Shown: positions 4,457-50,266, numbered from the stretch's first letter. The stretch: 64,000 nucleotides of DNA from Thalia democratica (GCA_965202585.1 OZ241832.1:33542001-33606000); one strand, 5' to 3'. Numbers and translations: made by a program. The notes: generated from the sequence alone by a model not told the origin.

Positions 4457-7220
4457 ACACCTTAGTGTATATGATTTACATTATTTTATTAATAAAACTT
4501 CTCAGTTCTCATAAAAGGACATTGTTTTCATATATGTTTTCATTAAAAAACTTTTAAGCATTACAAAAGTATCATATACACTTCTCTGTTTTATTTTTAA
4601 TAACTTAAATCATTTAAGTAAAAATAAAGGCTTATATTGAAAGATAATGTTAATGAATTAAACTTAGAACAATAAGCAAAGCTAAAAACTTTGTTTCTAA
4701 AAAAAAGTTATAACCTATCAATTATTTTTAAAAATAAAAATTTATAAATAAGCTGAAAAAATTACTTTATTGACTAATTAAGATGATTAAAATAAAATTT
4801 ATATAACATTTTTTTTTTGTTTTTTACAAATAATTTTAAAGATTCGTTTTAATGTCAAAGCTTTTAAAATATTCTATAAAGTAAAAGCTTTACAATATAT
4901 GAAAACAATAGGCAAAAATTATAAATTTAATATTGGTGAAAGCTGTTTTTAAATTAATATTGTTTTAGTAGAAAATCTAACAAAAAGAATCTTTTAATAA
5001 ATAAATTCACATACCTTTTATCGACTATATTTTAAAGCTTGTATATTTTATCTTAGTACATACTTTTTTGGATTTGTTTTGGAAATTAAAGTAAGAAATA
5101 TTATATTATCATTCAAACTTTGCCTTTTAAAACTCAATTCAAAATAATGCCAGATAGTGTGAATACCCTCAATAGATTACGTTGATGTTCTAAAAAACAC
5201 TTAGGAATGACTCACGATAAGTCGTACTCTACTTTATCATAAGTATTTTTTATCACATTTAAAATAAATTAGATAATAGTTTATAAGTAAGTTTTAATTA
5301 CATTTTTCTTTTTTTTTTTTAATGTATTTAGACAACTTCTGGAATTTTTTTACTATATCAAATTGCCTGATAACTGATACCATTAAAACATCAAGAATCA
5401 TGTACAATGCATGAAGAAAAATCAATTTATTTAAGTTAAAGATTTTGAAGAAATATTTTACAGTGAACTTAAAAACTAAGTTTAATTATATATAATTTAA
5501 ACTGTGAATTGTCTAGTATTTCGATAGTTTAAAAAAATGTTTATAAATTATAATATATACCTTAAGCTTATAAATATTTTGTATGAATAAACAGTTAAAA
5601 ATAACTTATATTGGTCATAACTTATTAACTATAACAAGTGGAATTACTTAAAAGTTAACAAAAATTAGGAAATTTTTTCAAAAAAGATTGTGAAATATAA
5701 ACAAAACCTATAAAAACTATAAAAAAAAGATTAATTTTTGTATGCAGTTAATTAAAATTTAATTTTTGAAGTAGTAATTTAAAATAATTTGTTTTAAGGC
5801 AATCTGCTTTAACTTTGCTAATTGGATAGGTATAAACTAAATTTTTCTATGTTTTAAGCATCTGTTAACTTGTTAATTAGTATTTTAATATAAACTTTTA
5901 TTGTTTGGTTAATTTTATTGTTACTTAAAGTAACAATATTACCTAATAATAGGAATTGTACTATTAAAAATTAAAATTCTGTTATCGTTTTTAGTTCATA
6001 AAATGCTAAATACTAAGTAGTTTGCTTTGAACTCAAGTTAGAATCAAATATTTTTAGAGTATTTATTTTTAAGATAAAATCATGGATGGATTTGCAATTT
6101 ACATCAAAATTATGAAATACTTCAGTAAAACTTCAAAACTTAATTGTTTTTTGTATTTACTTGCTTTTAACATTTATTAAAAAATTCGTTCAAGTTATAT
6201 TAATGGCTTGAAATATTTTAAAACTATTAATTTTGACAACCTACGCATGAGATATAATAAAAATAAAAATGTCTTATTGAAATACTCTATTTAATTTAAG
6301 GTATTTGTTTTTAATTTACATGCTAATTGTTTTTGAATAAGATGTTCTATAGAAACATAAATAATTAAAATTAATGAATTAAGACTAGGTTACTGAAACT
6401 AATAATTCATATGTAGAATTTGTTAAAATTAATTTAAATCTGTTTTTTGTATGATATTATGAAGTTTAAAAAACAATCTAAAGTCTAAAGCTTTATGAAG
6501 TTTTAAATTTTAACACAGAAAGTTTTATTTGAGATTAATTAATTACTTATCTTTCAGCTTTTCAAGTTAATACTTTGTTAGCTTTTTAATAAATAAAGAC
6601 AACTTTCAATTTAGTTTAATCAAAATATCTTATAAAAAATCACATTTAATTAATGCATTATTAAGCTTTTGTTTAAATAAAAGCACGTGAACTTTTTGCA
6701 AAATTGCTTCATACAAAAGTGTTCAACAAAAAACAATTGAGTATAATCGTTGCAGAAAAAATGTTTGAAACAATCAAAACCTATTGCAGCCTGTTATAAA
6801 ATTCAATTGTCATAATTAAGTCTACAAGTTAAGCTTTACAATCTAAAATTTTTATATTTGAACAGAGTAGAATTACAAGTTTAAGAAATAAGAATACGAA
6901 AAAAGATGAGAATTTTTTCAAGTTAATCATTTCAAGAAAGCTTTAATATATAAAGATTGTTTTAATTTTGAAAGTTTTATTTTATTGGTTATTTCATATT
7001 AAAATAAACAAAACATTTGTTTTGTATTTCAAAGGTTTTGTACAAGAGCTAAAACTATTTTAGCCAGTTTTATTAATAAAAACGACATAAAATCGAATTT
7101 TAAAAAATAAAAGTTTACTACTTATTCTCAAATTTACAACTAAGTAAAAAACTATCAAGTTATAAAAAAGATATATTGCTTTATGAAAAAAAAACAGTTT
7201 ATATATTGGAACACAACAAT

Positions 7221-7829
7221 ATGAAAAATTTAATGGAGTCTTCTAATTTGAACAAGAATCATTCAAATCTAAATAAAAATCTAAAAAGCAATCATTTTCC
7301 AAGCAACACTTCAAAATTTCATTTTTTCAAAAGAACCTTAAGAATACTGTTAAAAATCACCAGAAGAGCGCTTTACACACTGGCAGTTTTATTTTACTTG
7401 GTAGCAACCGAATCAGCCAACTTGGTAAAATTCGCGTGCACGAAACTCCGAAACTTTTATCTGCTCATTTCAACACCGGACGAAGAAACCCTTGACCATT
7501 TTTCCAGACACCTGTGGAGAGTGGAGATACAGAGACTCAGCGACCTGTTCGAACAACGAACTTCAACCATAAACGAGCTGCGACTCAGGTCGAGCGAACA
7601 TTACCGATTGAGCGAAGAACGAATATCAAATTTCAAAAGTTTCGAGTCGAGCGAAAACGAAGCAGGGATGCAGTGTGTTGTTTGTCTGAACGAATTTGGA
7701 CTCGACAGAAGTTTGATTCAACTTGACTGCGAACATTGTTTCTGCGCCGCTTGCATTAGAAAGTGGTTTGAAAATAAGAACTCGTGTCCGGTTTGTAGAA
7801 GAACATTTTACAATACTAATTTGAAGTAA
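7221..7829 (+). CDS. Intronless RING-finger protein (probable E3 ligase) with a hydrophobic segment
   Basis: First ATG at 7221. C-terminal CVVCLNEF..LDCEHCFCAACIRKWF..SCPVCR gives C3HC4 ligand spacing in a RING-H2-like context. ALYTLAVLFYLV is hydrophobic. Confidence 0.85.
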   Translation: MKNLMESSNLNKNHSNLNKNLKSNHFPSNTSKFHFFKRTLRILLKITRRALYTLAVLFYLVATESANLVKFACTKLRNFYLLISTPDEETLDHFSRHLWRVEIQRLSDLFEQRTSTINELRLRSSEHYRLSEERISNFKSFESSENEAGMQCVVCLNEFGLDRSLIQLDCEHCFCAACIRKWFENKNSCPVCRRTFYNTNLK

Positions 7830-8004
7830 ACTTGATTTTATTATTTCAGATTGTTGTTTGTTATATGATTTTTTTTTGACACAGTTCATATTTACAGACT
7901 CAAAATACTAAAGTAGAAATTTTCAGTTATTCTCATTTTAAATTTCAAAATTATGCTAAAGAGTGTTTTAAAAGTATTTGAAGTTTCTATAATAAATGTA
8001 TTCC

Positions 8005-8212
8005 CAAAATCCACCCGCGTTCAAAACACACGCATTCAAAATCCACCCCATTTTTTTTCTTTATTTACTAATTAACTTTATATATATTTTTCTCTTTTTG
8101 CAATTTCCAAGTTTATTTTTTATTTATTTTTCACTATCACTTTTACCCCTAACCCTTACCTTCCACCGGTAAGCGGTTCTCGAATTTGACTGGGTGGATT
8201 TTGAACGTGTCC
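8005..8212. mobile_element. Short MITE-like inverted-repeat element with a telomere-like ccctaaccct core
   Basis: ttcaaaatccaccc at about 8035-8048 (partial extra copy at 8005-8026) is inverted relative to gggtggattttgaacgtg at 8192-8209; internal taccctaacccttacc. Confidence 0.5.
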
Positions 8213-9724
8213 TAAAATATAAACTGTTAGTTGCTCGCTTACTTGAAGAATTTTTATGTGAAAATTTTTATTTTCATAACAAAAAAGATACTAACTTTTT
8301 GTTTAAATTATTTTTGTCAAGATTACTCCAAACTAAATAGTTTTAAAGAAAACTGTTCAAAATATTAACTAACTATATTAAACTAAGTTTACTGACTTTA
8401 AACATAATAGTAAAAAATATAGTGTAATTAATATATGACTTTATCTTTTATAAATACTTTATATGATTCAACGTTTTTGTTAGTTTTTAGTAAATACAAA
8501 GAACTTTTTACTATAGTTGTTAAAAATTTTTTTTAAGCCCTTAAGCTTTATTGTTATAACTTAATATCGTTTTATGTATAATTTTTTAAAAGTTTTTTGC
8601 TAAAAAATGTTTAACTTAATTATGTGTCATATGTGAAAGCCATTACATACTAAAATTATTTAGTCTCAATAATTTGTGTGACTAATTTGGCTTGTTTTAA
8701 AATGGAGTAAAACCTAAATTTTAGTTGCTTTTATGAACCAAAAGGATTAAACTTTTTTAGGTTTACTTCTTTGTAAATGTTTACCTAGCAAGTTTTCAAT
8801 AACTTTTCATGTTATGAAAATGACTTTATTTAAAAAAAGAGTTTTTTTATAACAAGTATATAAAAAAACAGTGAATACTTAAACTTCATTTTAAAATTTT
8901 CAAATAAATATTGTTATTTTTATCAAGTTTTTCATTATTTCGTATACCTCTTACACACTGTTAACTTTATGTTTTATTTATTTTTTGCTATTGCTTCTGC
9001 CTAATAAACTACAACTAACGATTACGTTATATTTGTTACTACGTTACTAACTAAAACTAATTTGTTTTAATAAGTTCTGCTAAAGTTTTGTTTTACTTAC
9101 AATACTTTAAATTGAAAGCATTGGTTTCAAAATTTAGCACATACAAATCAAATAGTAGTAAAAAAAAACTAACGGGGATATAAAGTAGATACAAGACTAC
9201 AATTTTCATAGCATTTATTTATTTTTAATGTGTTTTTGAAAGAAAAAATGATGAAAAGTACTATAATAAGTACCAATCATGTGTAGGGTTTATGTTAGGG
9301 CTTAAAGTTTTTAAGGTTCAAAAATTACAAGTACAAGAGGTTTTATCACTAAATTTGAATTCAAAAGTTTGTATTTTCAAAACCTTTTTTTGATTTAAGC
9401 AAATTAGTTTCAGAAACTGTAATACTTTTCTATAACTTTTTGATTTAAATAGCAAAAAGCTCTAATTCTAGTTTTTATTTATCTTTAATTCTTTGATAAA
9501 GTATTGTTTAGTAAAATGTTTTTAAGAAAAATATCAGAGCTGTCTTAAAAAAGAAATATAAGTTATTTTTTACTTTATCTTATGGTATTTTGAATTTCCA
9601 CACTTGTTTAGCTTTGTTTTTAAGAACTAAACTAACTTATTAAAAAGTTATAGATTTTTCGATTTCAACTAGTATTTAGAATTCAAAATATTTTAATCAG
9701 TTATAGAAAAGTGAAATAGTTCGG

Positions 9725-12338
9725 TTATGAGAACTCTTCGAGCAAAGAGTCGATTGCTTCGTTTAATTGCTCCGTAAAATTTGAGGTCGATTGAAGCAGA
9801 TTGTTCCCAGTGTTCTGAATTGGCAGATTTGCACTACATCCAATGTTTTGACTAGCTATGTGTGTGCTGTTACCATTGATCTGGTTAGTCAAGTTTGAAG
9901 TGTTTTCAATGCTTTTATTGGTAAGGTTTGAAACATTGTTTGAAGTTGGTTCCAGGTTGGACAAGTAAGTTGAAATTGGTTTTCGAAGTTGTTTTTGTTG
10001 TTGTTGTTGTTGCTGCTGCTGATGTTGTTGTTGATGTTGTTGTGGTTGTAGTTGATGTTGTTGTAGATATCCAAAGCCGTAAACAGCTTGACTTTCGTTG
10101 GTATTTTGCCCCAGAGACATCTCATTTGGAATGTAGCGTGAATAAGGTTGTAGCTGGTGATTGTTAACTGGGCGAAAATGGTCGATACCAACTTGTAACT
10201 TCGTTGGAGTCTCACCGAATACTGCAGTGACATCTTCGCTGTTCAAGCTTGGAAGCGGTCGGTTTGTCACATTGTTCACAGCTGGTTGTCTCTGTATTTG
10301 GTTGCTGCAACTTAAAGGTTGAGCAGCAAGTGAGAATGCTTGGTCAATTTCTTTATATTTTAAAGCTTTATTTATTTCGATTTTTGAGCGTGCTTTTTTC
10401 AAACTGCTTAACAACTCTCTGAAGTTACAAGGTAGTTTTATTTCGGTATTTATTGCTTCGCTGAGGCTATTTGCGATTCTGTACTTTTTACAATAAAACC
10501 ACCTGTGAACACACACCTCGTCCAGTTCTATCGTTCTGCTAATCGCCACAACTTGCTCGTTGCTGGGAAAACTTTCAACGCTACGACACATTGTTAAAAG
10601 TTCAACACGGTTTTTAGGCAGTTCAAAGTCGTAAGCTCTGCTTTCTTGCTCCTCATTCTGCGAGTTCGTGCAAACCCGCTTGACCGCGAACCACAAGTAC
10701 ACGTTGAGCCGTTCTGCCCTCAACGCGATGCTGAAGTTCGTTATGCCGTCATAGCCCGGTATCTGTGCTTTTTTGAAAAAGTATTCAGCTAACGGCAGCT
10801 GGCACGTGTCCATGAACTTGGTTGTTGCTTTAGTGTTTCGGTTGACCTGAAACCAGTTTCTAATGTAGTTTTTGTCCTTCTTAGTCGTTCTGCTTAGGTA
10901 GTTTATCTCAACAAATGAAGGGTGCATGCTTTTAAGGAAGAAAGTTGCCAATGCATTTTCAGATTCATCTTCATCAGCTGTTGTTGTGGAGAAGACTTGA
11001 TTATCTGTTTTGTTATTTTCATTTGAAACATTTTGTATATGTTCAGAATATTTATAACGATAAGTCGTGAATTTTAATAAAAATATGAAACTACTTGTGG
11101 AAATGTTGTTACCTTGAGTATTTTGATAATTCCTATCAGTAGAAGAACTTGATGTAACATAGTTGCTGTTAGTAGATAAACCTTGATTAGCTAAAAAGCT
11201 TCTTGGTTTTCTTGCTGTGTTTTTAATAAAACTGTATTTATTATGTTTAAAATAGTTCTTCTTAACTTTCTTTTTAGGTGTGTACGCTAAATTATTTTTT
11301 GCAAAAAATTCTTCCCAGAAAGTTTAGATTAATAATTTAAACTAACAAATACATAGTTAAATATTACAAAAGTTAAAATTTTAGTTTTAGATAAACCTTT
11401 AAGAACTTTAAAACTTTAACGAAGCTTAAAGATATTTTGAAAATTTTAAAACCAGTGCATAAAAAGGTTTAAATACACTCATCACAACAAAAGTGTTGTA
11501 ACAAACTATGCAAATTATTTGTTCAAATCATAGGTTTAGTATCATGAACATTTGTTTTTTAGGTACACTTAAATTTAAACAAATTACAATTAAATGAATT
11601 GTTTTATGATAAAGTATATTAAAAAGAATAAAGTTTTCATAGGAGTTAAAACTTAAATTTTCAATCGAAAAAAAAAAGCTGTCATTATTATTTATAACAC
11701 AGCTGAACATTCACTTATGTAACTATATTGATTTTGAAAATTTAAGGAGTTGTTAAGAACTTTTATTTTGCTAGTTAATACAAAAGTATGATTTATTTTT
11801 AGTACTTTTCTATTGATTAACTTAAATTTCCACTAATATAATATAAAAGTTCTTATGTCTTTTGAAATATTTTACTGATTGTTTAACAAGTTTAAAAACA
11901 TTGCCAAATAAAACACTAACGTAAAATTTGTTTCACCCTTCCGTTTCTTGTAGTTTTTATCTTGGTATTTTCTTCTGATGCTGAAAAACAATAGCTTATA
12001 ACATTATTTGCGTTAATAAGAAACTCAAGTGTAATATTATACAAGTTGTTAGAATTGTTTTTTTTTTCATCTGAGTTTTAAAAGAAATAAGAAAAACTTG
12101 AAAGATATTTTTTTTCGATTTGTCTAAATAAGTATTTAAGACATATAGTAAACTAACCGCAAATTTTTGGAATAAATTTTTCTCTGTCCTTCCAGTTTAT
12201 TGTATTGTACTCAGAGATACCAAATTCAGTTGATTTTCTTGAGTTGTTTTCAACTTCAGACTTCTGCTTAGACAGGTATTCTTTTAGGGCTGAAAGTTTT
12301 TTCTCGAAAGACACGTCATCCTCGCTTCTCCGTAGCAT
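9725..12338 (-). CDS. Triple degenerate-homeodomain protein, paralog A (about 580 aa), with polyQ tail
   Basis: Exon 1 12338-12158 (ATG, 60 codons+1, donor gttagt). Exon 2 probably 11286-9725 (acceptor aatttag, phase 1; frame open from 11323). Three helix-3 WF motifs (RNWFQVNR, YLWFAVKR, HRWFYCKK) with homeodomain spacing; PKKKVKK NLS-like motif; Q-rich tract. Confidence 0.8.
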
Positions 12339-14249
12339 GGCTACTTATTTTTAATTATTTAAAAAGCAAAAAGAGATGACGCATAAAGAAAAAGGTTACA
12401 TCAAGCAACCAATAAAAATTAAAGGTTAAACAGCTTTAAAATGCATTAAAGTATACTTAAAAACATAACTATGATAAAAATAAGAGTTTCGTGTTTAAGT
12501 TATACAGTTTTGCTCTGAAAACTAATTTGTATTACTAATATTTCTTAAATTTGTTTACGTCTGATATCACTTCTACTTTGTTTACGTCTGATATTATATC
12601 TAGACCCTAACTATTACTTTACTTCAACTAATATTTATCCCGACTTACCTTTCCTTCAAGTCTTGATTTTACAGATTGTAATATTTTTTTTGATACTTAT
12701 ATATTAAAAAAAAAACAGAGCTAATAAACTAATTAGTGTATATTTTTGTGAGATAATTTTCTGAGTAATAGCACTAGTTGTAAATTACTGTATATGTTGA
12801 ATTAAAGTAATTAGCACACTTAATCAATATTAAACGTGTATATTAGGTAAAATTTATTTCTAGATAAAACACTGTTGGTACTGTTTTAATGCAACGAAAA
12901 TAGGCTCATAAAAAAATTATTGGAAATTAATACAAGCAGTGCTTCTTAATTTTTTGCTATTTTTTTACAGTGATTCAAAATTGTTGTACAAAACGTAGAG
13001 ACTGATTAGTTTCAATTATAATTATTTTATAGACAAGCTTGATTAATGTTTTACATGCGTAAGTAAAAAACTTTTTTATAATAAATTTTTTTAAATATTT
13101 TAATAAAGGTAAACAAATAAGTGTTATGATGAAAACAATCTATTCGTATAAGCTTAAAATAGCTAAACAAATTTAAAACAATATTGTATAGTCTTTAGTA
13201 TATGTTAAGCACGTTATGAATTTGAAAACTTTTTATTGTTCAGTTGTATGTTCGTTTTAACTTAACAAAAATTACTATTATGTAAAATTACTTTGAGTAT
13301 AAATAAAAGTTAAGCTTTTTTAGTCAAATAGTGTGTTTAGGTTTTACATTTTCAAAAAAAAAACTATCATTCTTAAACTTTGTTTTATACTGTAAATGTG
13401 TTTTCTTCAACTTTCTAAAAGGTCTTTGTTTTGGGCCATGTTATAAATATATTTACTGCTTTATTATATTTGTAGTGTAAACTTTTTTTATAAAATTAAA
13501 ACATGTCTTTTTTTGAAGAACCACATATTTTAATTAAAAACTTCGCAACAAGCTACATATTAACTTGTAGCCTTTAATAAATTTTACGTAAGCCGTAGTT
13601 TTTTAAAATTCTAGTTATAAAAATAAACAAGTTTCAGAATGATATTGTACTAAAACAATCAAAACATCATTAGGATATTCACTATCTATATAATAGAATG
13701 TTTTGTATTTCATTACGCTCAAAAAACATATTTTGTCTCATTTTTAGATCTCTAATCTAGAAAAACTAGTGTTCCATTGATAAAAAGTTTTGTTATAATC
13801 GATAATGATATAGTAATAACAAAACTTTAGAAAAAATTTTGTGACTTTTATATATGTATTCTATAGACAATGTGCTGTGATCGTCGTAATAATTTATTTA
13901 ATGAGATTTACTAAGTATTTTTTGAAGTAAAAGCATACAAACAAATTCCGAAATATCTGACTACTTGATTAAAAACCTTTAGTTTTTCAAATGACATAGT
14001 CTTAATTATTGTACAACAGTATAAAAGAATATAATTCAGGCAATATAATAAACTGAGTATTTTATAATATTTTTCGTACTAAATAATTGTTTCACTGTAA
14101 TAAAATGTTATTCATTTTCCGAACAAAGTTTGTTAGTTTTATTACACCTAAAAAAATAGAATAGGTATTGTAAAATTAAGTCCTGTTATACTTTTTTTTG
14201 TGCTTAAGTTAAGATACTTACCACTTATGCTTGTTATTGATCTAAATTA

Positions 14250-15728
14250 AAAATACCCACCAATTTTGAAGTAGATAAACTTTTTTAATTGATAAATTCA
14301 AAAAAATACATCTAGTATCACTTCTGAATTTAGAATAAACAACATAAGGTTACCTTCAACTAAAGTGTTTAAAGATCTGGGAATTTTTATTGCTGAAAAC
14401 CTAAAATGGAACCACCATATCAATTACGTTTATCAAATTGCATCAACTATTTCTTTTCAAGTTTTAAAGAGTTTTAAATCTACAGATATAAACATTCTCA
14501 AAAAAATTTATCTCGTTTACATTCGTCCTAAGTTAGAATACAACACACCAATTTGGTCTCCATACCTGAAGAAAGATATTAACCATCTTGAATCCATTCA
14601 AAGAAAATATACAAGAATAGTCTTCAACCGTTGTAACATCTCATACACATCTTATTTTAATAGACTCTCAAAACTTGGTATTAAGTCTTTAGAGTATAGA
14701 AGGATTGAGTTTGACTTAATTACTTTTTTCAAACTGATTAATAGTGAAACTACAATTAATTTACAGTCTATTTTTTAACCTCATAAATGTACTTATTTAC
14801 TAAGAGGTAACAGCAGAAAATTTACATGCAGACATAATTTCAATAATAATGTTTGGCATAATTCTTTTTTTTATCGTTCAGTTGAATTATGGAACAAGCT
14901 TCCAAACGAATTAGTTTCTTGTAAAAAAGTTGAGCATTTTCGGTTAAGGTTAAAAAAGTTTGATTTAAATAAATATTTTGTTAGCAAAATTCATAAGTGA
15001 TTTTTTTGTTGTTGTTATTTCTTCATTAACCACTGGTTGTAATTGTCTAATTTGGTTTAACCTATAGCTTTATTTTATTAGCGGCGCCTTTCCTCTGTGT
15101 ATAACAAAACCTGTTCCTTAATACATAGTTTATTGGGCTGTTAAAGTGCTAGAGGCCTTGGGTTCTTAAGTTTTGTTTATAGTCAGTGTTCTCAACATTT
15201 ATCAGCTACTACGAAAGTCCAACAAACGCTGAGTTATCTGAGTATTAAAGATTTGAAAGTAAATATGAAGCAGGCTCTCCTAAGAAAAATGAAAAACGTT
15301 GTTCATATAAAAGCGGTTCTAGTTATACGAATAAAAGTGAAACAAGTTGTATGGATAAAAGTTAAGCCGGTTACTCAAATGAAAGCTGAACCAGTTGTTC
15401 AAATAATGTGAAGCTAGTCATTCGAATGAAAGTGAAACCAGTTTTGGAGTGAAACCATCTGTTCGGGTGAAGTTGAAGTAGGATATTGTTGTTCTCTTTT
15501 CGAAAGCACCGGAATTATAAATTTTGTGTTATAATTTTTGGTGTTTTTATGTTAATTTTTAAACTTTAATTAGTTAAACTCAGTTTTTTTTTTCATTTTT
15601 AATGTACAATTTTGGTTTATTTTTGTCTTTTTGTTGTATGTCTTTCTGTATAAGTGGCCTAGGTTTTGATGCCTGGGTCCTTCGTATGACAATAAACTTA
15701 CAATAATAATAATAATAATAAATAATAA
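14250..15728 (+). mobile_element. 5'-truncated CR1/L2-group non-LTR retrotransposon (RT thumb/C-terminus, 3'UTR, (AAT)n tail), disrupted
   Basis: FKDLGIFI..LKWNHHI..YIRPKLEYNTPIWSPYLKKDINHLESIQRKYTR..RRIEFDL. After an in-frame TAA at 14776-14778 the frame continues LRGNSRK..FFYRSVELWNKLP. aataaa followed by (aat)n at 15702-15728. Confidence 0.9.
15285..15480 (+). repeat. Degenerate ~24-bp tandem repeat inside the LINE 3' region
   Basis: Recurring atgaaag(c/t)gaaaccagttgtt-like units; one frame reads IKVKQVVW/IKVKPVTQ/MKAEPVVQ. Confidence 0.5.
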
Positions 15729-16544
15729 CTTATTTTCGTATTTTTTAAATATAAAAAATTGACTGAAAACTAGATGTAAATTAACTTTGATACTGTTTTA
15801 ACTGTGCCATCTAAAGATAATAAACTAAAGTTTAAATTTATCACAAACTTAATGTCATAAAATACAAAAAATAAATTTAATTACTTTATGTTTTTCGATG
15901 AAAGAAGTAAGTATTATCATTAAAAAAAATACATTTGAACCAAAGTACTATTAAAGTAGTATTTTAAATTAAAACTCTATGCAAAAAAGTTTTAACGTTT
16001 TTCAATATATTGGTAAGTTCAAAAACTTGTCTAGAGTTTTCATAGTATTGCATATTTTGAGGTTTATAAAATACTATTTCAGTTATTAAGTTAACAAAAA
16101 TTAACCAAAAGCATATTTTTTTTAAATAAAATTAAAAAAAGAATGTTATTAGGTAAAAATAAGGAGCAGTATTATTCATAAAAGAAACAAAAATCATACA
16201 CGTAAATAAAAAATAATTTGAAAACTTTTAACAACAACTTTAACAGCAAATTAAGTTATGTTAAGTATCTTTGTTTACTATTAGTTGTTGGTTGAAAAGT
16301 AAATAGCTTTTTATCAAAGAAAAAAAAAGTTGTTTTTATATTTTAATCAATCCAAGCTATATAAACAAACATATAGCATTTGAAAAAATATTGAACTTTC
16401 AAGCTTAAAAAGTCGCTTTGCAAATTTTTGTTTTTTTCGAAACTGCAGCAAAACTGCTACGCCAAAAAAAAATCTAAGCGATACCTTTAAAGTAAGCGAT
16501 TAAATTACACAGGTGTTGTAAAAACCGATTCTACAGCACTAACT

Positions 16545-19076
16545 CTATTGTTCGTTTTTGTTTCTGTACTTTTCAAGCAGCTTGTTGATTTCGTGAATGC
16601 CGCGGTTCAGCTCATTCTGGGCCTTCGCGTCGTTGGCGATGAACTGAGTCGGTTGGTCGCTGACGTTGTTGGTTGTCTGGTTGAAGCTTGGAGTGAAACC
16701 GAAGTTGTTCTGGTTTCGAGAATGCGGCACGCCAGGCGTCGCTGGTGAGTTGTTGAAACTCGGCGGCATGTCGGCAAGCTGACCAGTTCGGTGCAAAAAA
16801 TGGTGGTTGTCGTATCTCTGGTTGGTGTGTTGAAATGGTGCGATGTTGTTTTGAAATGGTGCGAAGGTGTTTTGTTGTGCAAACGGTCTGCTTATCACGT
16901 GATTGACATTGTTCAAACTTGGCAACTGCTGGTGATGAGCGTTTCCGAAACCATTGCAAAACGGGTTTTGGTTTCTCGTCAACGGCATTGAATGGTTGAG
17001 TTGGTTGTTCGGGTTGAACAACATTTGGTTGAAAGGGTTTTGTTGGCTCAGAAGCAGCTGGAGTTGGTTCAAGTACAAGTTAGACGCAGTATGAAGCTGA
17101 TTAGGAGTGAAACTTGGTTGCATTGGAAACATAGAACCGCCTGGCATTTGGTTCGCTCGAAAACTGCTCGGTTTTGCTTGGTACGACGCATTTTGATCAA
17201 ATTGTTGGTTTTGAAGTTTATTGCCGAAAAAACTTTGCGGCCTGACATTTGTTGACCTGCGAGCTTGATTTGTATAGTGGTTTTGTGTGGATGTGCTTGC
17301 TCCTCCGTTTGTATTGCATGAAGCTTTGCTTTTGTTCTTCACCACTCTTAAGATGTTTTCAACTTTTTTCATCTTGAACCAATGATCTACTTTCACCTCA
17401 TCCACACCATTCTTTTTGCCTATGGCAATTACTTCTTCGAAACTCGGGGAGTTGTTGATGCTGAAAAAGAGTTCCAAGTTCCAGACGTCTTTTTGGCTGT
17501 AGTCAAACGAGTAGGCCGACAAAGCGTCCTGCAAATTTAGTTCTTTTCTCCTTTCGTTGAACCAACGGTACACGGCCAACCTTTCCGCTTGTAAGTTGTT
17601 GCTAAATTCTGTTATTTCATCAAGAGTTGGCGCGGGCGTCTGCTTGAAGTAAAACAAAGCCAACGGCATTTGATGCTCTTTCATGTACTCTGACTCCGTG
17701 AATATCATCATCAACTTTTGAAAAAACCAGTTTTCAACAAAGTTCGAGTCTCTGTCCGTGATCGAGCACAAGTAGTTTTTCTCCTCACCAGTCGGTTCCT
17801 CGCCCTTTTTCCGAGCGTAAAAAATTGCCAAAGTTTTTTCAACGCAGTCGTCGTTGGTCAGGTCTCGCTGAGTTAAATCTACGTGGTTCGATTCCGCCTC
17901 CCCGTTGTTTGCCACGTTGAATTGTTGCTGCAGCAAGTTGTTTTGCTTGTTTTGGGCGGATAATTTAATTGTTGGGGGTCTGTATGTGGGGTGTTCGCGT
18001 TGATGAGAAGTAAAAGAAGTAGAAGAAGATGGGAAGTCAGGGTTGCTATTTTTAGATAAGTCCAAAGGCTGGTTTGTTGTTCTACCTGAAGCAAATTTGA
18101 AATAGAAAAAATTGTTTGGCTTGATTTCTATGAGTACAGTTAACAAAAAAAAAAAAACAGCAAAGTTAACAAAAAGTTAAGTCATTTTATTATGCAAAAT
18201 TACATAAAAAAACTGTTGAATAATGAAAAAATGTTATTTTAAAATGATTTAAAGAAAAAAAAGTTTGTATACTGTTTCTAATCGCATATCGTTTATAATG
18301 CATTCTTCAGAAAGTCTCTACAGCAATATTAAGTTTATTAAATACACTAATTTTTTATAATTAAAGTTTTCAAGCTAAGAAGAACTGATTCAAAAAAAAA
18401 AGAATATTTAAACAATTAACATTACAAAAAAAAAGATTATTTTTTTTAAATTAAACGAACTATTGAATTAAAAAATATTTTCTTATTTGTGCGAAACGTT
18501 TATTTACATTATGAAATTATAGCATGTATGGCTATCTTACACTAACTGTGCAATGTGGTTAAAAACTTGTAATTTATAAATAGATCCACAAATACAAATC
18601 TAAATTTAATTTAGTTTTACTAGTAACAGAGTATTACAAAAAATAAACCTGTGATTTTTTTGTGCTTTCCATTTCTACTTTTTTTCACGCCAGTATTCTC
18701 TTTTAGCGCTGTAAAATGAGTTAAATAAGTTATCAAGCTCATCTATTTTGACTAGAACTTTTTTGTTGTTTCAATAGTCATTCTGATTTACTAAAACTTC
18801 AGAAAATAAAATCAAAGTACTTCAAGGATAGTTTATTAAAAGCTAGTTTTTATGTATTTGTGTATTACCGTTAATTATAAAGTATTTTAACTTACCAATA
18901 ACTTTTTGAATAAAATTATCATTTTTGTCGAAATTTTTGACTCGACCATTTTCGAAATCTAGTCTAGCTAATTTTTTAGAAATATTGTCGATTTCTAATT
19001 GCTGCTTTAAAATGCTTCTTTTCATGAGTAATATATTTTCGTCAATACTTTCTGTAGTTTCTTTCTTTCTTGACAT
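16545..19076 (-). CDS. Triple degenerate-homeodomain protein, paralog B (573 aa), with PLDLS motif and N/Q-rich tail
   Basis: Exon 1 19076-18896 (60 codons+1, donor gtaagt). Exon 2 18085-16545 (acceptor gcttcag, phase 1). WF motifs ENWFFQKL, YRWFNERRK, DHWFKMKK. HD3 YSQKDVWNLELFFSINNSPSFEEVIAIGKKNGVDEVKVDHWF has exact homeodomain helix spacing. Confidence 0.85.
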
Positions 19077-20570
19077 AATTGTGTAAAATATCTCACTGAA
19101 ATGTTATATACTTGCTTTAATACAAAACAAAAGTAGTTGATGTTTAATATATTTTACAAAAGTAAAACTTAAACCAAAAATGCTATAAAGAAACTTTGAC
19201 TAAATAAGATACTTCTACAAAAATATAAGTCTTTGGAACTATAAAAAAGTAGTTTATTACTAAGTGAACTTTATTTATACTAAAAAAAATGTTTTATTTA
19301 AAATGTAGTATTTTGTAGTTAGTAATACACAACTTAAGAAAAGAAACTAATATGAAAATAAAGTAAAGCTTATATTACCTTTCTAACAATAAAAAATTAA
19401 GTCAAGGTTTTGACTTTAACAAAACTAATTTCATCAAACTAAAGCATATAGTTACAAAACAGCTCAAGTGATTAGCATACAGTTAGAAGCAATTTTAATT
19501 TGTACTGTTTAATTTTGCTCTTACTATTACAAACAATTGTAAAATTATGCGCATAATAAAACTAATTGATAGAAATTTAAAACACACAAATTAACTAGTT
19601 CTAATGTCTGCAAAATTAATTTCATAGAACTATCGATTTGCAAAATTAATAGCAATTGTAAAAAAAAAAACTAATCTGTAAAAAAAAAGTTTTTTCTATA
19701 TTTTTATTCGTGCAGTTTGTTAAAATACAACAAAACAGTAACTAACAAAGAATCTTTTTTTTTGTGTTTAGTTTAATAAAAACACTTGTTGTATTGGTAT
19801 TTGTATAACTTTAATATAAAATCACTTGGTTTATTTTTGACTGTCTAAGAAGTTAATTTTAAGTTTAGCTTAATCCAAATTTATGGATTATAGGACAACT
19901 TAATTGACAAGGTTTTTATTTAAAACAATTTTAAGCTATTTTACCAATTTTTTTTTGCATAAAATACGTTTTCTGCTTGATTGATATACAAACTATCATA
20001 AAAACTTTAGTTTTACCTTTTAAAGCCGTTTGTTTCTTTTCAATTATTCATAAGAGAAAGGTATGAAATTCGAGTAAATTATACCTAAATGTATTTTTAC
20101 TGAGACCCATTTAACACAAAACTTTTGATAAGCACAGTAAAGTTTCAACCAAAAAAAATTGTATCCGTTTTTAATTGATGCAAAGTTTGGATTTTTTTTT
20201 CTTTTTTTAACTTAAAGTTATAAAATATGTCGAGTAGCAAAATGTTTTAAAGCAAGCTACTTAATTTTAATTACTTATGCAACCTTTAAAGAAACTTTTT
20301 TTGTGAAAAATTCCTATGGCTACTATGAAGAAAAAAAAACACAGTATTTTTTAAAAGTTTTCAAAAAAAAGTATTTGTTATCTCTTTTACAAATTCGATC
20401 AAGCTACACTCTCAAGTTATATCGCACATTATGCATTTGTTTTAGTCATATACAATGTATACTGCACAAATTTGGAAAAACATCTTTAAGTCACACAATT
20501 GTATACAAATTTTGAATAATTTTTTTTTGTTTGAATTTTATAAAATTCTAAATTTCGACTAAAAACTATT

Positions 20571-20783
20571 TTAGAACTATACAGTTTTCTTTATTTTTAA
20601 TTTATCATTTAATTTCCCTGTGGTTTACTTGTTTTGTTACTCTGAGTCTGAGACAATAAGTGATAAATAACTAAATAAGTAAACCACAGGGAATTTAAAT
20701 GATAAAATAAAACTAAAGCAAACTGTATAGTTCTAAATCTGTTTTGTTACTCTGAGTCTGAAACAATAAATGATAAATAACTA
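20571..20783. repeat. Inverted duplication with re-copied spacer (A-B-A'-B)
   Basis: 20571-20630 is the reverse complement of 20677-20736 with a few mismatches. Spacer gttttgttactctgagtctga.. (20631-20676) recurs directly at 20741-20783. Confidence 0.9.
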
Positions 20784-21358
20784 TATAAATACTATTTAGT
20801 GTTTATTGTTTAAGCTGATGTATAAATATGTTTACATTTTTAATTTCTGTTTATGTTTTAAGTTCATACAAAGCCGCCATGTTTTTAATTAAAAAAATCA
20901 TAAATTTAAGCTCTTATGAATCTTATAGAAAAACTGTTACTGTTGGTGAACAAGTATTTACATGCTAAATATTAGCTACACTACTGTTGTCTTTAATTAT
21001 TTTTTAAAAGTTATATCAAAATCTGACCTTAAAATTATTTTTTGAGTGTAAATATTTAGTTAAGTTTAATTGTTTAACGGTGCTAAGATTATTTTCGACG
21101 AGGATTATAATTTTTAAAAATAAACATTTTTTGGGCAAAAATTTTAAGACTCCTCATAATATAATTATTTTTTGTTTATTTTTCAAAATAGTTTAAGTAA
21201 CGTGTTTGTAGTTTTTATGCGTTCAATTTTTTTAATACTACTATAGTTTTATCTTTATTTTAAATGTTGTGATGTAAACTACTTGTATGTAAAAACTAAG
21301 AGTTTTTGAAATAAATTATCTTTTGCTGTACAAAAACGTTATTGGTCAATTTATGTTA

Positions 21359-23764: not shown

Positions 23765-25547
23765 TTATTGAAGTAGTTCATCTAAAAAAGGTGCTTCTTT
23801 TTTGTACGCTTCCAAGCTAACTCCCTTCTGTTCTAAGTTTTTTAATATCTTCACTAAAGTGTCTCTCTCATTCGTTAATTCTTTTACCTAATAAATTTTA
23901 AAAAGTAAATTTTAGTTAACACGTTCTTGACTTACACAAAGTGGAACCTACCTTGTTCTTGTTTGCCTCTAACTCGGTTGTAAATTTATTTCGTGAAGTT
24001 TTTGCATACTTTCGGTTCTTCAGAGTTCTTCGTTTTAATTTGTACATATCTTTCTCTTCGTCACTATAATTAGCGATAGATTGTGAAAATTTATTAATAC
24101 TGATTCATAAACATTGTTAGATAAACTTTACTTTGGATATGTACTTGAACATTACTTACCAGTAATTATACAATAAGATATACAAGACAAACGAATTCAA
24201 TAAAACTAAATATATTTCACGCAACTCTCATCAGTAAAGTACCAAGCTAATAAAACATAAAATTTAACAAACTTATATATTAACCAAGTATTTATAAAGT
24301 GATCAAAAGAGTAATAAAAGACAATAATAGACATAAATATGTGCTATATTAATTATATATTTAAACATAAACGTTTTCAAGAGGTTCTATATATCTGCTT
24401 AAAATTTCATAACATTTTATTTAGTTATTTTATTTTGTTATTTTTTTTTATAATATCTGCTTTAAAACTTAGATACTTAGATTGTATAACTATTTTTAGT
24501 ACTTTTAACATGCACTTTACATAATAAAATCAAAACTATAAACAAAAAATATTTAGATTACTACATTTTATGTACTTTATCACCATTTTGGATACTGTTC
24601 TACCATAAACTGTTTGATAAGCAGCTTCAAAACGTTCTATCAAAAAAAAAATATATATATTTTGGTGTATTTAACTTGTTTACTTTAAAAAAATATTATT
24701 TATCAAAAAAAGAAAGAGAGATTGTGCTAAAATATATTAATTCATTTTTTAAACAAGCAAGACTTGATTTATAACACAAAAACAGCTAGGTTAAAATAAA
24801 AATTTAAAACCGAAGTTTGCAACATGTAACTCACCTATAAAATTTCAGCTTCTTATTAAACTCAGGAGTTTTCAAACTCAACAGTTCTTCATCTGTTATG
24901 ACTGGATTTCCTCCTATTCCGTGTTGTTGCTTGTGGCTTTTTGTGTATGGAGTGTGTATGTTTTGGGCCAGCACGTGTCCATTGTACACCGGCTTGTTCG
25001 GAGTAGAACTGAATTGTGGTAGGTAATTTCTACCAGAACTAGTACCACCTTGCGAGCATGCATTAGCACTACTACCCGTTGCAATACTACCACCACCTTG
25101 TGAGTAGGTACCATCGTTATTACCCGCTGCAAGAAAACTTCCGCTAGATTGCACCACAGCCACGCTATTTAGCACTGCACCACTGACTGGCTGCTGATTA
25201 CTATTAACCGGTTGGTGGCGCTGCTGATAAGATCCGTTCATATTCGTGCTGACAAGATCGTAGCTCGCAGGATAAGGACTTTGCTGCTGGTAATCGGGAT
25301 AAGAAGGGTTGTTGTCATAGTAACCAGCTGTGTTGCTGCTGACCAGACTGTCGTTCGGGTCGTAAGAGTTCATGTGAACTTGCTGTTTGAGCTGTTGGTT
25401 CTGGTTACCGTACGCAGTTTGCTGCATGTAAGATGGGTCGGACCTGTGAGTTCTGTTGTCGTATTGATGGTCGGCTGCTCTTTTCTGGGGGTAAGTCCTG
25501 TTCAGTTGACCCGTGAAGTTTTGATTGTTTGTGTTGTTGCTATGCAT
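23765..25547 (-). CDS. Maf: Maf-family bZIP transcription factor
   Basis: Exons 25547-24835, 24063-23952, 23887-23765. The spliced product [46 protein letters not shown] aligns without gaps to the Maf extended-homology plus basic region ([45 protein letters not shown]), followed by a leucine zipper. The N-terminus is Q/N/Y/S-rich. Family-level call only. Confidence 0.9.
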
Positions 25548-48877: not shown

Positions 48878-50266
48878 TTAATTTTCACCTTTTCTTGTTT
48901 TAACCAAAATGAAAACCGGCTGCGCCAAAGACAAAAACGACAGAACTGTCAGGCCCAAGTTGAGATAGAAGAACTCTCCCTCCAAAACTCCCTCCAACAG
49001 CCAAACCAACAAGCTTTGCGAGGCAAGAATTACAGCTTGCACGCACGCCACAGCGCCGTATAGCGTACAGAATTTCTTTTGCGGAAAGTAGACGCTCACG
49101 AATGCGTTGCTGCCTGTAAAGAAGCAGACGTTTGCTGCCACCCGCACGAACATTGCGAAGTACTGCAGGGGGAGGGAACTAATCAAAGTGCACACTTGCA
49201 TCGTGATCAAGCAGAACGATCCTGCGAAGAGGCTGACCAGGCAACTCCTCATCTCCGCTGATCCGTCTTCGCTGTCGAGTTTCCGCTTGTAGAAGTCGGT
49301 GGTGTAGCCGATGAGCAAAGACATCAACACTCCCCCTGCTTGCATCAGAGTGAACGCGAAAAAGTAATCGTCGTAAGTTTTGTTTGCCGTTTGTTGCTCG
49401 GATGAGATGCTTTTGATGAAAGCAGTAAAGTAAGCGGAATAGCACAAAGTCAATAAACTGACGACCGAGGTCGAAAGCGCGGTGGTTAGAAAGTAGCCCT
49501 GACGCATGATGCAAAAGATCGAATCTTCTTCTTTTGATTCCGGCTCACTAGCACTGTTCTCCAAATTTTCTTTCGAGTCTTGCTTGTCGTTCGAAAAAAA
49601 CCAATCAAAGTCTTTCATACCGTACTTGAAGTCTTTTCCCGGGTCGCGAGGAACGCTCTTTCTGGGCGTCAAGAGAATCGTTCGGATGTTGAGACCAAAG
49701 TACAAGGAGGCGTAAATCCAAAACAAGTTTGAAAAACTGACGCCAATCTCGTGGAAATAACCGAAAGCGAAAAACAGCACCGGGGCCGAGCAATACGCGC
49801 CTGTGACGGTTGATACGTACAAGTTTCGTCTGTTCGGAAACAGGTTGGAGTTTTGAAGGTTGCCCGCGTGCAAGGAGCAGCCCGCAGCGTGCAGGACCGG
49901 AAGGGCGACGTAGAGCAGGAAAGAAAGCTCGCATCTTGCCACCGCCAAAAGCACGCAACCCGCAACGCCCAAGTTGACCAGAACGAACCGGCCCGCCCAC
50001 GTTCCGAGCTTGTCGAACATCAAGCCCGCGAGCAAGGTGCAGAACGGTCCCACGCAGCAAGTTACGGAGTAGAGGAGCCACAAGCTGTTTGTTTGGTCGT
50101 CTTTGCAGTCACCCGTGCTGTTTGTTGCGTTCTCGGCGCACGAACTTTTGTACAATCCCTCGCTTATCAGGAGCGGTCGCAAGCTTTGCCATCCGAAAAA
50201 TATGCCGGAAAAAAGCATGTTTTCCACCATGCAAGTTACCCATGATAAGATGTTCTGACACTTCAT
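48878..50266 (-). CDS. Slc43a: Intronless SLC43-family (LAT3/LAT4-like) MFS transporter, 462 aa
   Basis: ENMLFSGIFFGWQSLRPLLISEGLYKSSC matches the SLC43 TM1 signature; about 12 hydrophobic segments with a central polar loop; markedly GC-rich relative to the flanks. Family-level call. Confidence 0.85.
   Translation of the reverse strand: MKCQNILSWVTCMVENMLFSGIFFGWQSLRPLLISEGLYKSSCAENATNSTGDCKDDQTNSLWLLYSVTCCVGPFCTLLAGLMFDKLGTWAGRFVLVNLGVAGCVLLAVARCELSFLLYVALPVLHAAGCSLHAGNLQNSNLFPNRRNLYVSTVTGAYCSAPVLFFAFGYFHEIGVSFSNLFWIYASLYFGLNIRTILLTPRKSVPRDPGKDFKYGMKDFDWFFSNDKQDSKENLENSASEPESKEEDSIFCIMRQGYFLTTALSTSVVSLLTLCYSAYFTAFIKSISSEQQTANKTYDDYFFAFTLMQAGGVLMSLLIGYTTDFYKRKLDSEDGSAEMRSCLVSLFAGSFCLITMQVCTLISSLPLQYFAMFVRVAANVCFFTGSNAFVSVYFPQKKFCTLYGAVACVQAVILASQSLLVWLLEGVLEGEFFYLNLGLTVLSFLSLAQPVFILVKTRKGEN

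Follow-up and report, generated by a model that had tools for sequence, protein, structure and literature searches.

Tandem triple-homeodomain genes without Asn51 in Thalia democratica, members of an apparently undescribed family

Introduction

Among the described proteins that come closest to the genes considered here, those of the ZHX and HOMEZ families carry several homeodomains per protein, some of them with an atypical helix 3, and these homeodomains serve dimerisation and repression through partner proteins. ZHX proteins combine two N-terminal C2H2 zinc fingers with four or five homeodomains, HOMEZ has a leucine zipper next to its second homeodomain, and the ZFHX (Zfh-2/ATBF1) proteins are very large, with many C2H2 fingers and three or four homeodomains. 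HOPX keeps the homeodomain fold without binding DNA and acts as a co-repressor through protein partners. In homeodomains, the textbook module for reading DNA, the most invariant contact is that of Asn51, which is near-invariant and bidentate and reaches adenine. Here we consider two genes in a 64,000-nucleotide stretch of DNA from Thalia democratica, a planktonic marine animal (GCA_965202585.1 OZ241832.1:33542001-33606000; this whole stretch is called the window, and positions are counted from its first letter). Both genes, A (9725-12338) and B (16545-19076), lie on the minus strand, and each encodes three homeodomains (HD1 to HD3), all six of which are without Asn51. As judged by the sequence comparisons described below, A and B are tandem paralogues of an undescribed, lineage-restricted triple-homeodomain family.

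Results

The two loci have a G+C content of 33-39%, compared to ~25% over the AT-rich 64-kb window, and in a mechanical listing each appears as one long open reading frame (ORF; 408 and 533 amino acids, aa) with a short ATG-started ORF upstream. By tblastn within the window the long ORFs prove to be paralogues, with 35.6% identity across 208 aa (E 2e-25), and they align homeodomain by homeodomain, as put forward in the original prediction for this locus, an account made from the sequence alone; tblastn found no third copy of the family in the 64-kb window. Searches and fold models used the exons one by one, not the spliced proteins.

That the repeats ending in a WF pair are homeodomains, as had been proposed, is borne out by Pfam, by profiles of Protein Data Bank (PDB) entries, by AlphaFold2 (AF2) and by Foldseek, and on these profiles and models we regard them as true homeodomains. 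Pfam PF00046 is the top match for both proteins (27.2 bits for A and 29.1 bits for B, gathering cut-off 22.9), while single domains score 13.6-22.6 bits, just under that cut-off, and the Pfam Homeodomain matches end at profile position 52. W48 and F49 are present in all six homeodomains, L16 and F20 are largely kept, and the domains abut with a spacing of 54 and 63 residues. In a PDB profile search with five family members, every match was a homeodomain: for HD2 the best were the POU6F1 homeodomain (E 7.8e-5) and an HD-ZIP protein, for HD3 they were ZFHX3 HD1 (2da1, E 7e-4), ZHX1 and ZHX3, with ZEB1 and ZEB2 also found, and for HD1 there were very weak matches only. The AF2 model of the triple block, built on a 14-sequence alignment, has a predicted local distance difference test (pLDDT) of 92.4 and a predicted template modelling (pTM) score of 0.84, with nine helices arranged as three three-helix bundles; the three homeodomains are thus predicted to form one compact block. 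Foldseek placed the DUX4 double homeodomain first and dozens of single homeodomains after it, with template modelling (TM) scores of 0.8 and a root-mean-square deviation of 1-2 A, and found no match for the whole block in the PDB at E <= 1e-3. In the ESM Atlas no model reached TM 0.5, the nearest structure cluster being ZHX2 at TM 0.39.

These matches could be taken to mean that A and B are diverged descendants of multi-homeodomain proteins of the zinc-finger (ZF) class, of the ZHX/HOMEZ or the ZFHX type, which now lack zinc fingers and form a tunicate offshoot of a known family. The best HD3 profile matches and the ZHX2 cluster in the Atlas agree with such a descent, as do ZFHX-sized four-homeodomain proteins that match HD3 in the family-profile search described below, one of which bears the name zinc finger homeobox protein 4, and the architecture of HOMEZ, which combines three homeodomains with a leucine zipper, as the Pfam name also implies. 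A single Zhx with just one zinc finger and two homeodomains is reported for Ciona (PMC7144352), which we count on the same side. However, no zinc finger was found in or around A and B, the C2H2 pattern being absent from all six frames of 8000-21000, as the original prediction had it, and there is no Pfam match to Homez or zf_C2H2_ZHX. The ZF-class E-values are marginal (1e-3 to 1e-5) and no better than those for POU or HD-ZIP homeodomains, the TM-score of the Atlas cluster is low, and the putative coiled coil of A and B is N-terminal rather than beside HD2. We therefore hold such a descent to be improbable. Orthology with ZHX or HOMEZ proper, against which the prediction had also spoken, was rejected on the lack of zinc fingers and of a Pfam Homez match.

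Relatives found by word-based searches are unnamed proteins from marine metagenomes only, in agreement with the lineage-specific family that had been suspected. A literature search turned up no publication describing a triple-homeodomain family for pelagic tunicates. Gene B has orthologues in P0001 (L001, L002 and L005; 70% identity) and P0002 (L003; about 45-46%), and gene A has one in P0003 (67% identity) on L004, a Tara Oceans metagenome contig of 6.6 kb whose exon 1, exon 2 and homeodomain exon are arranged as in A. In L005, L006 and L007 a B-type large exon is followed, 2.8 kb downstream and on the same strand, by an A-type exon 1, from which it follows that the tandem pair predates these species. 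When the family profile was used for an exhaustive HMMER search, 171 matches reached E <= 1e-3. The seven at E <= 1e-30 include two orthologues and one 17-domain poly-homeodomain protein, and the ZFHX-sized proteins mentioned above stand lower in the list. Triple-homeodomain relatives with the family motifs are P0004, P0006-P0008, P0010-P0012, P0028 and P0035, of which P0010-P0012, P0028 and P0035 are partial members (E 1e-9 to 1e-25). The motifs, E..LA.FFL..M.P in HD1, NQ.PLA..YFK and AE.LA…F in HD2 and DE.KV..WF in HD3, are found in A and B as well, and in the 14-sequence alignment columns P23, W45, F46, Q64, P66, L67, A68 and F72 are invariant. A maximum-likelihood tree has three clades, namely A, B and the remaining members, with a branch length of 2.68 for the A clade.

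Loss of Asn51 is not a trait of the whole family. Asn51 is kept by P0008 in HD2 (YFQNRR) and HD3 (WFYN), by P0007 in HD3 (WFKNKR) and by P0011 in HD2 (YFNNKR), and the loss from all six domains is consequently a derived state of A and B. Since these distant members keep Asn51 in one or two domains, the family records a stepwise loss. Just N-terminal of HD1 many members have the motifs PSTSK, present once or twice in most, and (V/I)IDLT, which resembles a SUMO-interaction motif; the B counterparts are SSSTS and HVDLT. Upstream of the P0156 homeodomain exon, which belongs to a distant member, L010 (650-940, plus strand) carries about five in-frame tandem repeats of the form ADIPSTSKFADERP.DIPSTSK.

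The positions that contact DNA in canonical homeodomains were read with residue numbers anchored on W48 and F49 of each domain, and residue 51 is V/V/C in A and Q/E/M in B, exactly as originally noted. In gene A, HD1 (10817..10996, all domains being on the minus strand) has V51, keeps R53, has an acidic N-terminal arm and matches Pfam on its own at E 9.5e-5; HD2 (10655..10834) likewise has V51 and R53, shows column-by-column homology with HD2 of B and gave no Pfam Homeodomain match when taken singly; HD3 (10463..10642), with C51 and K53, aligns with HD3 of B and reaches Pfam E 0.06 alone. In gene B, HD1 (17691..17876) is 62 aa long owing to a 2-aa loop insertion and has Q51 and L53; HD2 (17526..17705; Pfam alone E 6.7e-4) has E51 and keeps R53; and HD3 (17343..17522; Pfam E 1.1e-4) has M51, K53 and an INNSPS loop as in ZFHX3 HD1. 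Residue 53 is therefore R/R/K in A and L/R/K in B. Residue 5 is T/T/D in A and T/S/S in B, with Arg5 in none, and the N-terminal arms have a net charge of -2 to +1, with no basic arm in any domain. The net charges of the whole domains are +2/+4/+1 in A and -4/-3/-1 in B, compared to 0 to +11 in other multi-homeodomain proteins, in which Asn51 loss is also common.

From these residues one might still argue that A and B are ordinary sequence-specific factors that have acquired a new specificity through positions 50, 51 and 54, with the Q/N-rich tail as an activation domain. The homeodomain fold is kept, with W48/F49 throughout and R or K at position 53 in five of the six domains, the A homeodomains are net positive (+1 to +4), helix 3 is strongly constrained, and Q-rich tails are typical of activators. 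The relatives with Asn51 in HD2 or HD3 imply, moreover, that the ancestor probably bound DNA. What such an explanation has to contend with is the disappearance of the adenine contact of Asn51 from all six domains, the want of Arg5 or a basic arm in any of them, the acidity of all three B domains and the end of the Pfam matches at position 52. We judge it unlikely that A and B are factors of this kind, even if some DNA or RNA binding by the homeodomains is possible from their sequences.

Comparison between species also establishes the gene structures, and by that comparison A and B are intact, constrained genes. Gene A has four exons of 181, 60, 102 and 1280 nucleotides (nt), or 540 codons, and gene B three of 181, 60 and 1541 nt, or 593 codons; the frame of each gene stays intact for 1.6-1.8 kb, and the splice sites are canonical GT-AG with conserved phases. 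The shared first exons are as predicted, 181 nt and phase 1 with GT donors, at 12338-12158 in A (12158..12338, minus strand, ATG at 12338) and 19076-18896 in B (18896..19076, minus strand, ATG at 19076). Contrary to what had been thought, the large exon does not follow directly. Both genes have a 60-nt exon 2 (A 11921..11980, B 18649..18708, both minus strand, phase 1-1 with canonical AG/GT), and A has in addition an exon 3 and an intron. Exon 3 of B (16545..18085, minus strand, 1541 nt including the stop) begins at an acceptor, ttcag before GTAGAA, which is kept in L001 and L005, and contains PLDLS, VDLT, the three homeodomains, a Q/N/P-rich tail and a conserved C-terminal helix.

In gene A, exon 3 (11113..11214, minus strand, 102 nt, phase 1-1) encodes RKPRSFLANQGLSTNS… and exon 4 (9725..11004, minus strand, 1280 nt including the stop) encodes the three homeodomains, then a Q-rich tail that includes a polyQ run, and the conserved C-terminal motif IDSLLEEFS. 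In a three-species DNA alignment of the window, L004 and L009, the 102 nt of exon 3 (11214-11113) show zero indels, and upstream of its cacag acceptor at 11215 there are interspecies indels of 4, 2 and 1 nt. The third intron (11005..11112, minus strand, 108 nt) has GT..AG ends and in the window is in frame and free of stops, which is why it is hidden inside the apparent long ORF; its counterpart in L004 and L009 has in-frame TAG stops and a 10-nt deletion. An acceptor for the large exon at 11310 was rejected, because 11310-11215 holds non-triplet indels and a stop in L004 and L009. The length of exactly 108 nt means that retention of the intron would add 36 residues and leave the protein unbroken. 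For annotation the corrected three- and four-exon models matter, as an ORF-based caller would read through the stop-free intron. We presume that A and B are expressed and spliced in this form.

Indels are absent from the coding parts or come in multiples of three, and most of the changes there fall at synonymous sites. By Nei-Gojobori estimates, omega for B against L001 is 0.09 over the homeodomain block and 0.26 over the tail; for A against L004 it is 0.20 over the homeodomain block, which is indel-free, 0.35 in exon 1, 0.22 in exon 2 and 0.39 in the tail, where all indels are multiples of three. Across L004, L008 and L009, exons 1, 2 and 3 are free of frame-breaking indels, and both indels and stops are found in the introns. 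Nucleotide identity is alike in exons (~76-85%) and introns (68-81%), which is expected in such a two-letter-like genome. Fast evolution, which had been attributed to the pair, holds for the branch leading to A and for the tails only, and not for the homeodomain block, which is strongly constrained.

It might be argued that A and B are duplicates in decay or never expressed, either young pseudogenes or functionless ORFs, and that the loss of Asn51 is simply a sign of decay. Gene A does lie on a long branch, its listed differences include more non-synonymous (22) than synonymous (13) changes, and it has no coverage in metatranscriptome X1 (share of words 0.08), where coverage within the checked range 9600-15599 is confined to a high-copy repeat at 14483-15590. 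Against decay stand the intact frames with canonical splice sites, the intact A and B orthologues that two or three other species carry in the same tandem arrangement, omega of 0.09-0.20 over the homeodomains and 0.2-0.35 in exons 1 and 2, and the restriction of indels to introns or to multiples of three. With omega of 0.09 in B and 0.20 in A over the homeodomains, and with frames intact, we reject the pseudogene explanation as very improbable; the listed differences suggest that the constraint on A is looser. As a separate observation, DNA runs X2 and X3, whose sample matches the assembly, contain a second haplotype ~7% away over gene A (10100-11300), and X4 (organism label B) has a non-reference form ~5% away over gene A. 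This haplotype divergence indicates either that heterozygosity is very high or that a species complex is involved.

The products of exon 1 (60 aa in each gene) align end to end without gaps, 15 of 60 residues being identical, as had been reported (E 0.013 by tblastn within the window). When A-type and B-type profiles that include the metagenomic orthologues are compared, hhalign gives a probability of 93% and E 2.5e-7 over all 61 columns, so the homology of the two modules is clear. A profile search of metagenome contigs found seven short exon 1 ORFs, four of A type (P0165-P0167 and P0169) and three of B type (P0168, P0170 and P0171; 77-93% identity to B). Against L004, exon 1 of A has 60% protein identity and no indels. 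A hidden Markov model of eight exon 1 peptides found no match in L010-L013, which carry just 0.1-0.9 kb upstream of the gene. The description of the N-terminal domain as unfamiliar stands, in that Pfam holds no family for exon 1 and the ESM Atlas feature matches of ~0.8 are at noise level. In the AF2 model, exon 1 forms a single extended helix spanning residues 11-59; pLDDT exceeds 90 for residues 11-30. The a/d heptad positions of B exon 1 read I, M, Q, I, L and I, I, I, L, and in A the pattern, as read from the alignment, is kept for about three heptads. The model and these positions together suggest a short, dimerising coiled coil.

Exon 2 encodes a basic peptide in B, LKENTGVKKSRNGKHKKIT, which is ~50-60% identical to the peptide of A, SEENTKIKTTRNGRVKQIL, and to exon 2 of L004, L008 and L009. 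A-type exon 2 was found in L004, L007, L008 and L009; against L004 the A exon has 85% nucleotide identity without gaps and 15 of 19 full codons in common. From its composition the peptide resembles a putative nuclear localisation signal.

The Q/N-rich, low-complexity tails that had been described are present in both proteins. Each also ends in a C-terminal helix, IHEINKLLEKY in B and AIDSLLEEF in A; the C-terminal segment of B (…ELNRGIHEINKLLEKY…; 16548..16658, minus strand) is conserved in L001 and L003 and can be aligned to the C-terminus of A. At its start the large exon of B reads …NQPLDLSKN…, in which PLDLS (18054..18068, minus strand) matches the CtBP-binding consensus PxDLS and is kept in L001 and L005. 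CtBP might be bound by B through this motif.

Elsewhere in the window, 14200-15600 is a very high-copy repeat with a summed contig depth of 10,000-100,000 in DNA runs compared to ~100 in its flanks, and within it an ORF at 14365-14778 (plus strand) resembles reverse transcriptase, as a fragment of the C-terminus of a non-LTR (long terminal repeat) enzyme. A 255-aa Q/N/S-rich ORF at 24831-25598 (minus strand) ends in …VITDEELLSLKTPEFNKKLKFYR, which resembles the segment directly preceding the basic region in bZIP factors of the Maf/CNC type; the ORF probably represents an exon from a bZIP gene. At 7176-7829 (plus strand) a 217-aa ORF has a C-terminal RING-type Cys/His pattern (CVVCLNEF…CEHCFCAACIRKWF…CPVCRR), and 48878-50266 (minus strand) holds an apparently intronless ORF for a 462-aa multi-pass membrane protein, with 37% G+C compared to the ~25% background.

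Discussion

Our consideration of what A and B do starts from sequence and models, and we lean, with a confidence somewhat above even, towards the view that they are dimeric nuclear co-regulators rather than classical TAAT-reading transcription factors. In such a scenario the exon 1 helix, with its three to four heptads of a/d hydrophobics, would dimerise the proteins as a coiled coil, the 20-residue basic peptide of exon 2 would serve nuclear import, and the triple-homeodomain block would act mainly as a protein-interaction module or in some other non-canonical way. B would in addition recruit a CtBP-type corepressor through the conserved PLDLS, and is probably the CtBP-recruiting member of the pair. 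A role in protein contact is suggested by the loss of all classical DNA contacts and the acidity of the B domains, taken together with the tight conservation and predicted compactness of the block. Dimerisation, nuclear import, CtBP binding and the loss of canonical DNA binding are, in each case, our extrapolation from protein sequence.

Several observations weigh against this proposal of dimeric co-regulators and deserve attention. R53 is kept in three of the six domains and K53 is present in two more, W48/F49 are in all six, and the A domains are mildly basic, which would not be out of place in proteins that contact nucleic acid. The compact packing of the triple block is read from pTM only. 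The coiled coil is read from a single-chain AF2 model of exon 1 on a 3-sequence alignment (pLDDT 80, pTM 0.44). PLDLS is five residues long, is without counterpart in A, and is degenerate (PLDLF) in L003. Gene A, finally, has zero coverage in X1, the sole metatranscriptome sharing words with 9600-15599, and its listed haplotype or strain differences are 22 non-synonymous and 13 synonymous.

A more ambitious version of the co-regulator proposal would see in the triple block a rigid, compact homeodomain module, a new protein-interaction or non-canonical nucleic-acid-binding domain, dimerised by the N-terminal zipper and coupled to CtBP in B, and in the family a set of lineage-specific corepressors that modulate the many further private homeobox genes of this genome. 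We put this forward tentatively, as an idea we would at present rather doubt than accept. Whichever version is preferred, Asn51 has been lost from all six copies and yet selection on them is tight, so that the pair offers a natural test of what the homeodomain fold does without TAAT reading. To this we would add the corrected gene models, the N-terminal helix and the basic exon 2, a tandem order kept between species, the stepwise loss of Asn51 within the family and the PLDLS motif as the contributions of this analysis.

How A and B relate to the known systems can now be considered more closely. With ZHX and HOMEZ they have in common the several homeodomains per protein and the atypical helix 3, and HD3 of the family matches ZHX1 and ZHX3 weakly, ZHX2 being the nearest structure cluster. 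They differ from both in having no C2H2 fingers, in homeodomains that abut instead of being spread, in the loss of Asn51 from every domain and in a putative coiled coil encoded by a separate N-terminal exon; the similarity is marginal throughout. Measured against the ZHX architecture, A and B have three homeodomains and no zf_C2H2_ZHX match, and for HOMEZ (PF11569) no match was found at E up to 1.

The resemblance to ZFHX3/ZFHX4 (Zfh-2) is confined to HD3, whose loop and helix 2 (…F.INNSPS.EE.I…G….V..HWF) resemble those of ZFHX3 HD1 in the profile match to 2da1 (E 7e-4). Nothing besides HD3 is in common. ZFHX proteins have 2000-3700 residues and many zinc fingers, compared to ~540 and 593 residues and no fingers in A and B, and the aligned stretch of ZFHX3 HD1 keeps Asn51. 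DUX4 is nearest by fold, as the top Foldseek match, with its two tandem homeodomains superposed at TM 0.59 by target. However, it is of the PRD class, its homeodomains were crystallised on DNA (according to the entry titles), the identity is 16%, and it has no N-terminal coiled coil.

Tandem arrays with ~60-70 residue spacing, in which most domains are without Asn51 and W48, F49 and R53 are kept, are also found in poly-homeodomain proteins, of which P0005 has 17 domains, P0009 has 13 and zinc fingers as well, P0013, from the stick insect Timema, has nine and P0014 has eight. These four proteins, from metagenomes and Timema, are unnamed, and we found no description of them. Unlike A and B, they have more domains, are basic (0 to +11) and are without the motifs NQ.PLA..YFK and AE.LAV.RWF, exon 1 and the tail.

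With HOPX the likeness is limited to the proposed working mode. HOPX is a single 73-aa vertebrate homeodomain, no orthology is implied, and an Atlas feature match to 'Homeodomain-only protein' at 0.80 is a lead only. By Pfam score and three-helix fold A and B belong to the homeodomain superfamily, and by the state of their DNA contacts (Asn51, Arg53 and the Arg5 arm) they depart from its canonical members.

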